64,000 nucleotides of DNA from Trichoplax adhaerens (Eukaryota; Animalia; Placozoa). Both the position numbers and the translations under genes were made by a program. The first letter of the stretch is position 1; every line of letters begins with the position of its first letter. The notes under the pieces were generated by a model. The model was not told the DNA's origin, searched no databases, and was given only the letters and a program-made list of their open reading frames with translations. The DNA lies in assembly GCF_000150275.1 (NCBI RefSeq), contig NW_002060948.1:2782180-2846179 (forward strand). The letters are read 5' to 3'. Shown here piece by piece: positions 34,801 to 37,465 of this stretch.

Positions 34801-37465
34801 ATGTATTATACTAATTTTGATGCCGGAACTATGTGCGAAATAAAATGTTTTAGATTAGCAGTATGACACTGACTATACTGTAGATATTTTTATGAAAAAG
34901 GAAATGGTGAAGTCAAACGATGAGAAATAATCGTATTAGTGTTAGCAACTGGTTATGATACTAAATTTAGTTTATGGTTCATAAGATTATTTTATTTTAA
35001 TAATCGTTTGAATTACGAATTTTGTACTAAGGATTATCAATTTGATATTGGTGGCGGAGAAAAATTTGAAAATTTATCGTCACTAATTGATTATTACAAA
35101 GACAATCCAATGGTAGCGACCTCTGGAACAGTAATTACATTAAAGCAGGTACAACCAAGTGTATAATTTGTATACAGTACATTCCATATATTTGTATGCT
35201 TTTTAACATTTATTTTACTATCATTGACCCTTCAGCCGTTTAATGCTACGCGTCTTACTGCTTCATCGATATGTGAACGGGTAACTGAATTAGAAAAGGA
35301 AATTGATGAAGATACTGGCCGGTCTGGATTCTGGGAAGAATTTGAGGTAGCGTTATTACGTATAAGCCCTGCCACTAATTATACAGTAGTTAAGTATCTA
35401 GTGATGGTATCTGGGATCGATGACTGGAAATAGTGTGTTAAATTTGATCATAAAGTTTATGTTGAAAGTATCCTGAAAGTAATTATTACAATGTTTATAT
35501 TGCGATATTAATTATGTAATTTTAGATGCTACAACAACAAGAGATGCGCCACTTATTTAGCAGAAATGAGGGCCAACGCTCCGTGAATAGATCAAAAAAT
35601 CGTTATAAGAATATTTTACCATGTAAGGATAAAGACAAGTTACATCGATAGTTAACAATCCTAAATTACAGCTTTGTGTCATCAAAAATGTTAATTAGTA
35701 ATGAACAAATATTTTATGATAGATGATCATACCAGGGTAGCTTTAATAAATGGAAATCATAGCGACGGATCTGACTATATCAATGCAAATTATGTATTTG
35801 TAAGTATCTGTATATTGTAGAACTTTAAAAGAAGTTAGTTAACACAAGCTATTTTATTAAGGTTTGCTTTCTGTAATTAATTATAACTTTAAAATGTTAT
35901 CTAGTACGAAATTAGTAGAAAGTTAGAGAAGAGTTATATTGCAACACAGGGCCCATTACCGAACACTGTTCAAGATTTTTGGAAAATGGTTTGGCAGGAA
36001 AAATCACATATCATCATTATGTTAACCAAAGAAGTAGAAAAGGGCAAAGTATGCTTTGCTTTAATGCTGGATGTGGGGTTTCATGACTACTTCCACAAAT
36101 GGACAAAATATTTATATATAAACAAATACATAGGCGACAAACTAAGATTTATTACAAAACTCACATGATTTCTTAACGTTTTAAATGCTTTCAATAGTCA
36201 AAATGTGCCACGTATTGGCCTCAGGTCGCTTCCGTCTTAGATTTCGATGGCTTAATGACAGTAAATTGTATATCTGAACGAGAAATAACTGACTTTTATG
36301 TTCGGAAGTTTGTTGTTACGTGTGTAGATGAATTTGTAAGTTTTACTCTTATCGTATGTAATGATGTAATGATAAGTGATAACAAATAATCTATTTACTT
36401 GCGTATCGCGTTATTAGGAGGAACGTATTATATATCAGTATCAATACCATTCATGGCCAGAACATGGAGTACCAGCTAGTTCAGCACCAATGCTAAAACT
36501 GTTTGACCAAATAAGTTTACAATGCAAAGAATATGACAACATTGGGCCTCTTATAGTTCACTGCAGGTTGTACAGTGTTTTTTTGACGTGCTATATATAT
36601 AACTATTTATATATTATGGTCTGAGTTTCTACTACTTCAATATTTTTATAACGCTAGTGCTGGTATTGGCAAGACTGGAGCTTTTATAACTATCGATATA
36701 TTACGTAATATTATACTAGATGGAGGTAAGTAGGTTTCGTCTTCTATTGAAAACTCATGGATTCTTTAACGTTGAGAAACTGATCTTTCTTACAATTCAA
36801 TTTTACATCACAGGTATAAATGTTGAATTAGATTTTCAAAAAACTATACTTGCAATTAGAACACAAAGATCTGGGTTGGTACAAACTCAGGTATAAAGTA
36901 GTACTGTATGAGTAAAATTTCAATATAAATAATTCAGTTACTGAATTAAATTCGTAAATTGTTTTATTAGGCACAGTATTACTTCATTTACAGAGTAATG
37001 GCACGTTTTGTATGGCTTCTTATGGAACAAATTAAGTTCGGGGAGACAACGGTATGGCTAGTATTGCGAGGATCATTGTTGTTCATTACAAATAATGGCC
37101 AAAGTGTAATTTTAATTTTAATCTATATATTGTTGGGAAAGTATTAACTCTTTTAAATATGTTTGCTAGGCTGGTAATAAAACTGTTGAACATCGTGAAA
37201 CATCATATGAAGCCGATAATATTGCCTTATCTACAGTGCCTACTCCACCACCGGTTGATCGAACATCTAAACCGCCCGGACAGGATAACGGGCCTCCGCT
37301 ACCAAGGCGTACACAAAGGTAATAATATGAGATGTCCTGTTAGATTATGATTTTATCATGTAAATCATTAAATATGCGGTTATTTACAACTACATACCGT
37401 ATTTTCATTACAGCAATAACGACAATAGTAACGAGTTACCTCCACCAGTGCCAAGGAGAGCATAA
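28896..37465 (+). CDS. PTPN11: SHP2/PTPN11-family SH2-SH2-PTP protein with degenerate catalytic motifs, ~586 aa; exons 28896-28909, 30072-30194, 33985-34185, 34477-34599, 34747-34786, 35032-35148, 35236-35346, 35526-35622, 35723-35799, 35905-36048, 36198-36335, 36418-36566, 36658-36725, 36814-36890, 36971-37051, 37170-37318, 37414-37465
   Basis: N-SH2 ([19 protein letters not shown]), C-SH2 (WYHG...[19 protein letters not shown]), linker GFWEEFE, and PTP motifs [58 protein letters not shown] and [12 protein letters not shown]. The 17 exons total 1761 nt with an open frame. Orthologue versus paralogue status is not resolved. Confidence 0.9.

Follow-up and report, generated by a model that had tools for sequence, protein, structure and literature searches.

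A 64,000-nucleotide stretch of the placozoan Trichoplax adhaerens genome (NCBI RefSeq assembly GCF_000150275.1, contig NW_002060948.1, positions 2,782,180 to 2,846,179 of the forward strand; hereafter the window, in which all positions are counted from the first letter) contains the only SHP-type gene of this species, and two residues of its protein tyrosine phosphatase (PTP) active site are replaced. The general-acid Asp of the WPD loop is Glu (D425E in SHP2 numbering) and the transition-state Arg of the CX5R P-loop is Lys (R465K), in a gene whose frame and splice sites are otherwise intact. The product is probably a SHP2 pseudophosphatase or near-pseudophosphatase, strongly impaired or dead as an enzyme, that is kept as a scaffold driven by its SH2 domains.

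Two catalytic codons are replaced in the Trichoplax SHP2-type gene

A preliminary description of the window had reported WPE instead of WPD, and Lys instead of Arg in a P-loop interrupted by an intron, and direct reading of the codons bore out both. The WPD loop is encoded by TGG (36454-36456), CCA (36457-36459) and GAA (36460-36462), followed by CAT GGA GTA CCA, and reads WPEHGVP, with Glu at the place of the general-acid Asp. The 5' part of the P-loop consists of CAC (36559-36561), TGC (36562-36564) and the AG of a split codon (36565-36566). The intron that follows has its GT donor at 36567 and its AG acceptor at 36656-36657, and downstream of it a T (36658) completes the Ser codon (AG+T) before GCT GGT ATT GGC, AAG (36671-36673) and ACT GGA. 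Once spliced, the P-loop is HCSAGIGK and not HCX5R, and Lys occupies the position of the invariant Arg. This splice is supported by the fact that the same intron position, within the Ser codon, is common to at least eight other PTP genes of the Trichoplax genome. No other WP[DE]xGxP or GxG[RK][ST]G motif was found on either strand between 26 and 41 kb of the window, and therefore no alternative exon is available there to supply the canonical residues.

Features of the active site (window positions, strand):
36454..36462, +: WPE codons TGG CCA GAA, with Glu for the general-acid Asp; the sole WP[DE]xGxP motif on both strands of 26-41 kb.
36562..36564, +: TGC, the retained nucleophile Cys, by direct reading and the residue map.
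36567..36657, +: GT-AG intron of 91 nt that cuts the P-loop between HC and SAG.
36671..36673, +: AAG, Lys replacing the CX5R Arg (R465 of human SHP2), by direct reading and the residue map.

Each replaced codon lies one nucleotide from a canonical one (GAA against GAT/GAC, AAG against AGG/AGA), and the assembly holds no second copy of the 351-bp WPE/P-loop segment that could serve as an independent reading. An assembly or sequencing error, or a variant private to one strain, could on these grounds hide a gene that is in reality canonical. Such errors would, however, have had to fall on precisely the two catalytic codons, each in a separate exon, and the other PTP genes of the same assembly are canonical. 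Moreover, the whole domain is unusually diverged, as would be expected of a long-standing change, and the conservative substitutions R362K and E508Q described below fit the same trend. We consider an error or private variant most improbable.

The gene is otherwise intact and has the domain order of SHP2

The gene model comprises 17 exons and about 587 codons, an open frame of about 1,760 nt in total, with 16/16 introns of the GT-AG type, consistent phases and no in-frame stop. The 15 internal exons were set by homology and GT-AG rules, and exons 1 and 17 were inferred; with this reservation for the two terminal exons, the earlier claim of 17 exons all in frame is upheld by the model. All searches and alignments of the Trichoplax gene were run exon by exon, by reference. 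Pfam profiles placed SH2 domains on exons 2, 3, 4 and 6 and Y_phosphatase on exons 10-12, and tblastn with SHP2-type proteins of 600 amino acids (aa) recovered one collinear gene. The N-terminal SH2 domain (N-SH2), the C-terminal SH2 domain (C-SH2) and the PTP domain follow each other in this order within one polypeptide, encoded by exons in one frame.

Exons of the gene (window positions, strand):
29981..37465, +: coding sequence of the entire SHP2-type gene, about 587 codons in 17 exons, by the exon model and tblastn collinearity.
29981..29997, +: exon 1 (inferred), ATG and 14 further nt, the last 2 belonging to a split codon; it lies 74 nt ahead of exon 2, and no other ATG...GT stretch close by has the required phase.
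30072..30194, +: exon 2, first half of N-SH2, R32 kept, Trp of the WFH motif replaced by Cys; Pfam SH2 E 4e-11, residue map.
33985..34185, +: exon 3, second half of N-SH2 and linker, H53 and E76 kept, blocking loop changed (N58T, T59N, G60D, D61N, Y62F, A72Q); Pfam SH2, residue map.
34477..34599, +: exon 4, first half of C-SH2, R138 kept; Pfam SH2 E 1.5e-15, residue map.
34747..34786, +: exon 5, middle strand of C-SH2, H169 kept; exon model, residue map.
35032..35148, +: exon 6, end of C-SH2; Pfam, tblastn, exon model.
35236..35346, +: exon 7, SH2-PTP linker and start of the PTP domain (GFWEEF, F251 kept); tblastn, exon model, residue map.
35526..35622, +: exon 8, phosphotyrosine-recognition loop with KNRY kept (Q255, R265, N277-Y279, I282); homology, residue map.
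35723..35799, +: exon 9, DHTRV and DYINA motifs; homology, exon model.
35905..36048, +: exon 10, YIATQGP, DFWxMVW and IIMLT motifs and E-loop (E361 and K364 kept, R362K); Pfam Y_phosphatase E 6e-18, residue map.
36198..36335, +: exon 11, KCxxYWP motif (K366 kept); Pfam, residue map.
36418..36566, +: exon 12, WPD-loop exon, ending with VHC and the AG of the Ser codon; Pfam E 8.5e-9, PDB alignments to PTP domains, direct reading.
36658..36725, +: exon 13, second half of the P-loop, SAGIGKTG; direct reading.
36814..36890, +: exon 14, Q-loop (R501, S502, G503, Q506 and T507 kept, E508Q); homology, residue map.
36971..37051, +: exon 15, Q510 and the last PTP helix; homology, residue map.
37170..37318, +: exon 16, C-terminal tail, proline-rich in places and with a single Tyr; homology, exon model.
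37414..37465, +: exon 17 (inferred), short proline-rich end (PPPVPRR) and stop; the only acceptor whose tail resembles cnidarian C-termini (PPxIPxRK).

By reading of the sequence, no YxN site of the Grb2 type was recognised in the Trichoplax tail. Upstream of the gene, at about 27500-28700 of the window, lies a low-complexity, repeat-like stretch with YSTV/QYSTV-type strings in all frames. The downstream neighbour (about 42270-45200, + strand) is a WD40-repeat gene, TAF5-like by eye, with several exons carrying LWD/WDV signatures.

Residues kept and changed

For a residue map, the exons were placed on mammalian PTPN11, on which the labels were checked, and 46 functional residues were compared. 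All four phosphotyrosine-pocket residues of the SH2 domains (R32, H53, R138 and H169) are kept. In the PTP domain, F251, Q255, R265, N277-R278-Y279, I282, N308, E361, K364, K366, W423, P424, H426 and G427 are kept, as are H458, C459, A461-G464, T466, G467, R501, S502, G503, Q506, T507 and Q510; the nucleophile Cys, the KNRY motif and the two Q-loop glutamines are thus retained, as had been proposed. The changes in this domain are D425E, R465K, R362K and E508Q. Every catalytic-site and phosphotyrosine-pocket residue mapped is kept save D425E and R465K, and R362K and E508Q fall at positions that contact SOS1. Of the ten classical PTP motifs, eight have the canonical form (KNRY, DYINA, YIATQGP, DFWxMVW, KCxxYWP, C459, Q506 and Q510 are present), the two exceptions being the general acid and the transition-state Arg. 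The earlier assertion of two lesions in an otherwise intact gene therefore stands, the lesions being exactly D425E and R465K. An essential catalytic residue replaced in a domain that is otherwise conserved and in a gene that is intact is one of the marks expected of a pseudophosphatase.

Outside the PTP domain, the blocking loop of N-SH2 carries six changes (N58T, T59N, G60D, D61N, Y62F and A72Q), with E76 kept; D61 is a hotspot of human disease mutations. The first SH2 strand has Cys in place of its Trp, and no counterpart could be assigned to W6.

A single SHP-type gene in the Trichoplax genome

Taken alone, the PTP exons aligned to PTPN11 orthologues with 306-320 bits and 50-53% identity, against 275 bits for the best protein without SH2 domains, in a comparison set biased towards SHP2 and receptor PTPs. 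By its SH2-SH2-PTP order and its best matches to PTPN11, the gene belongs to the SHP subfamily (NT2) of classical non-receptor PTPs, in agreement with the family assignment first made.

The assembly (105.6 Mb, 1,414 contigs, about 32% G+C) was scanned as a whole with the Y_phosphatase and SH2 profiles, and the window was the sole place where SH2 and PTP exons adjoin. A query of the genome with Nematostella PTPN11 led to the same conclusion. The second, canonical SHP2 that the preliminary description had wished to see searched for was found by neither route in the 105.6 Mb, and the WPE/Lys gene is the single SHP-type gene of T. adhaerens, without a canonical back-up.

Elsewhere in the assembly, one PTP gene appeared with identical scores on a small contig (G000:C1167:7185-8067) and a large one (G000:C1414:9710744-9712651), probably an unmerged haplotype or a duplicate scaffold. 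At least six SH2 matches are clustered at G000:C1408:1.913-1.995 Mb, and two near-identical intronless open reading frames in this cluster (377 and 404 aa; L001 1777-2910 and L002 1504-2718) encode an SH2 and a tyrosine-kinase domain.

Lys in the P-loop is rare and the PTP domain is diverged

Elsewhere in the Trichoplax genome, 13 PTP P-loops carry Arg and one D2-like domain carries Gln, and the WPD loops are mostly canonical. At two PTP loci, L014 and a portion of L008, the sequence resembles inactive D2 domains (WPH, VIHS and SNGRGQSG in the former, WPE and SNGGGRSG in the latter). Among 355 retrieved PTPs we obtained 339 P-loop matches, of which 337 had Arg and one was a spurious match in a C-terminal tail; the remaining match, the only one with Lys, was the D2 domain of a tandem receptor PTP. 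WPD and HCSAGIGR occur together in more than 100 SHP2 orthologues, which range from sponge to mammal.

In the PTP segment, Trichoplax is 50-53% identical to canonical SHP2s and the WPE-bearing hydrozoans discussed below are 54-57% identical to them, whereas mammal, anemone, sponge and brachiopod are mutually 62-73% identical. Judged by these identities, the PTP domain has evolved faster in both WPE lineages than in canonical SHP2s.

Searches for closer relatives of the Trichoplax protein gave negative results. No protein near-identical to exon 12 was found among 1.84 billion representatives, and a metagenome scan with this exon returned one distant relative (43% identity) and no placozoan. Protein searches listed only hydrozoan and other SHP2s, and neither the Trichoplax protein itself nor a placozoan orthologue, a blank that is uninformative on the existence of such proteins; a borderline rank had been predicted by local hmmsearch tests.

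Hydrozoan SHP2 orthologues carry comparable lesions

The SHP2 orthologues of Hydra vulgaris, Hydractinia and Clytia hemisphaerica, together with several transcript-derived proteins, also carry WPE (hydrozoan or hydrozoan-like set: P0153, P0152/P0336-P0338, P0157, P0151, P0156, P0159, and P0132 with P0332-P0335). In several of them KNRY has become KNRF. The Hydra P-loop is HCSSGVGR, in which Ala is replaced by Ser, a change that has been blamed for the inactivity of HD-PTP (PMC2661844), and in Clytia the P-loop His is Gln. In the P0132 cluster the P-loop reads HDGSGIGR, with the nucleophile Cys replaced by Asp in 5/5 members (P0132 and P0332-P0335, the latter on transcript-sized contigs). Like Trichoplax, the hydrozoans thus combine the SHP2 architecture and WPE with further departures in the active site and faster PTP evolution; unlike Trichoplax, they keep the CX5R Arg and are altered at other positions. 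The canonical state of the gene in anemone and sponge makes it probable that the changes arose independently in placozoans and hydrozoans. On these sequences the Trichoplax gene is no one-off, with hydrozoan lesions that are comparable or worse.

A description of active-site lesions in hydrozoan SHP2s was not found in the literature searched, and the paper on Hydra Shp2/Csw, which reports that the gene is expressed in a patterned way, does not mention the catalytic residues (PMC7260276). The previous statement that no natural inactive member of the SHP1/SHP2/corkscrew group has been described consequently holds for the literature searched, although the hydrozoan sequences themselves carry lesions comparable to or worse than those of Trichoplax. 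In a second hydrozoan-like SHP group (P0154, P0155, P0158, P0160 and P0166), which may represent a divergent paralogue, the WPD loop reads WPDK or WPET and the P-loop HCSNGIGRTA.

These sequences also bear on whether the Trichoplax gene could be an incipient pseudogene, that is, one that lost its function recently and whose frame is still unbroken. Two catalytic lesions, an altered N-SH2 loop and a divergence faster than in other lineages are what such a gene could display. Nevertheless, a frame of about 1,760 nt is open over 17 exons with every splice site intact, eight of the ten PTP motifs and all SH2 phosphotyrosine-binding residues are canonical, and this is the sole SHP-type gene of the genome; furthermore, hydrozoans keep comparably altered genes that are expressed, as indicated by the patterned expression in Hydra (PMC7260276) and by the transcript-sized contigs. 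We therefore judge a pseudogene highly improbable.

Discussion

What is directly established is the sequence of this gene, that it is intact and present as a single copy, and that Lys is rare at the P-loop position. The Arg of CX5R binds phosphate and stabilises the transition state, and Arg-to-Lys mutants of YopH and PTP1B are reported to lose three to four orders of magnitude, although R221K and R409K were not found in the literature searched. R465M, at the very residue changed in Trichoplax, is a standard dead allele of SHP2. We know of no assay of the combination of R465K and D425E. As for the general acid, changing WPD to WPE lowers the activity of PTP1B by about three orders of magnitude, and WPE is typical of inactive D2 domains, PTPD1 and HD-PTP (PMC2638020); the same change lowers the activity of PTPRK (PMC7320164). 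From D425E and R465K together, a very weak or dead phosphotyrosine phosphatase is therefore predicted. The characterisation of the protein as catalytically weak or dead, made at the outset, is thus the likeliest reading in view of the WPE literature, the mutants and the lost Arg.

How such a protein would work can be outlined from the residues that are preserved. Its SH2 domains would still dock on phosphotyrosine sites, its PTP domain would act as a binding surface, and hydrolysis of phosphotyrosine would be very slow or nil, so that the protein would operate as an adaptor through intact SH2 domains, a proline-rich tail and the PTP surface. The preliminary description had named a substrate trap and a phosphotyrosine-binding scaffold or competitor. 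The scaffold is likelier than the trap because the lost Arg is the phosphate binder, and the trap is weakly supported. In a classical substrate trap Ala replaces the Asp and the Arg is left in place, and loss of the phosphate-binding Arg should weaken phosphotyrosine binding in the PTP pocket, as in mutants of PTP1B and YopH. With this Arg itself lost, trapping is unlikely to be the main mechanism.

Known systems resemble the Trichoplax protein in part. SHP2/PTPN11 of vertebrates, corkscrew of Drosophila and the cnidarian and sponge PTPN11 proteins have N-SH2, C-SH2, PTP domain and proline-rich tail in the same order, and differ from the Trichoplax protein in that the latter has D425E, R465K and a rewritten N-SH2 blocking loop (D61N among others). 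HD-PTP/PTPN23 and PTPD1/PTPN21 likewise combine a single PTP domain, WPE and an intact Cys, and are reported to be (nearly) inactive on peptides and thought to be binding modules (PMC2638020, PMC2661844); unlike Trichoplax, they are without SH2 domains, keep the Arg and have their second lesions elsewhere. The D2 domains of receptor PTPs (LAR, RPTP sigma and RPTP alpha) also have WPE in a preserved fold, and in PDB alignments the Trichoplax WPE exon aligns to the D2 domains of LAR and RPTP-sigma (WPEQGVP) as well as to D1. However, a receptor D2 adjoins an active D1 in the same protein, whereas the Trichoplax protein has neither an active partner domain nor an active paralogue.

PTPRQ has WPE in an otherwise complete active site, as in Trichoplax, but it keeps the Arg, is an active phosphoinositide phosphatase and is of the receptor type without SH2 domains. 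It is the precedent for an alternative in which the Trichoplax protein remains an active phosphatase whose chemistry is re-tuned or whose substrate differs (phosphoinositides, or a slow "timer" reaction), its Glu and Lys perhaps co-adapted. Retention of the Cys, the His, the P-loop Ser/Thr, the two Q-loop Gln, E361 and KNRY would be unexpected were catalysis fully dispensable; both replacements conserve charge, and the phosphoinositide phosphatase activity of PTPRQ depends on WPE (PMC2661844; PMC2638020). Yet PTPRQ retains the CX5R Arg, and Lys was seen elsewhere only in a D2 pseudo-domain. In addition, lipid-phosphatase activity was not detected for HD-PTP, PTPD1 and PTPD2, two of which have WPE (PMC2638020; PMC2661844), and inactive domains such as that of PTPRU keep their Cys (PMC7320164), so that a retained Cys is no proof of catalysis. 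On this balance we regard a re-tuned phosphatase as unlikely, if less so than an error or a decaying gene.

For the impaired scaffold, a possible partner is suggested by a preprint of June 2026, which reports that RAS/ERK signalling is sustained by the catalytically dead SHP2 C459D in cells, fish and mice, and which proposes as mechanism that the DH domain of SOS1 is bound across the active-site loops of SHP2 (10.64898/2026.06.12.731952). Both C459D (the "CD" allele of the preprint, C463D in its mouse numbering) and R465M abolish catalysis, and signalling is retained for C459D; unlike the Trichoplax substitutions, these are laboratory alleles. The preprint names nine residues in contact with SOS1 (seven that were mutated there, and A461 and I463), and 7/9 are identical in Trichoplax, the other two being conservative changes (R362K and E508Q), of which E508Q is reported as mild (10.64898/2026.06.12.731952). 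On the + strand of G000:C1383, a RhoGEF (DH) exon (243497-243655) and a RasGEF exon (247770-248042) lie 4 kb apart. From the preserved residues and the preprint, we infer the scaffold role, with SOS as a possible partner.

Several points weigh against a kept, non-catalytic scaffold. Residual or re-tuned activity is possible because the Cys, His, Q-loop and KNRY are intact, and both substitutions keep the charge and are each a single nucleotide from a canonical codon. They could also be recent and not under selection, one placozoan sequence having been compared. The N-SH2 blocking loop is altered, and regulation may differ. Finally, the connection to SOS1 rests on a single un-reviewed preprint, and the DH and RasGEF exons on C1383 are a tentative candidate for the Trichoplax SOS, as they may belong to an exchange factor of either the SOS or the RasGRF type.

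A wider hypothesis, which we put forward as possible though doubtful, is that SHP2 catalysis has been eroded independently in Placozoa (D425E and R465K) and in Hydrozoa (WPE, KNRF and P-loop changes up to Cys to Asp), as the ancestral, indispensable job of SHP2 would be non-catalytic, namely the SH2-guided delivery of the PTP surface to SOS/RAS. SHP2 is a central and heavily drugged node of RAS/ERK signalling, whose need for catalysis has been newly challenged (10.64898/2026.06.12.731952). The non-catalytic idea would find a natural test in an animal whose sole SHP2 gene bears two textbook inactivating substitutions, and a further one in the hydrozoan class with similar lesions, in which the natural Cys-to-Asp change is the preprint's own allele. 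If the hypothesis is true, these genes are natural knock-ins that would lend independent support to the view that RAS/ERK activation can do without the phosphatase activity of SHP2, and if their products are dead enzymes and yet rescue SHP2-null cells or zebrafish, the non-catalytic mechanism would be ancient. The Trichoplax protein would also supply enzymology with a rare natural CX5K P-loop. If its impairment is real, the SHP subfamily, for which no such member is described in the literature searched, would join the PTP families that have pseudoenzymes.

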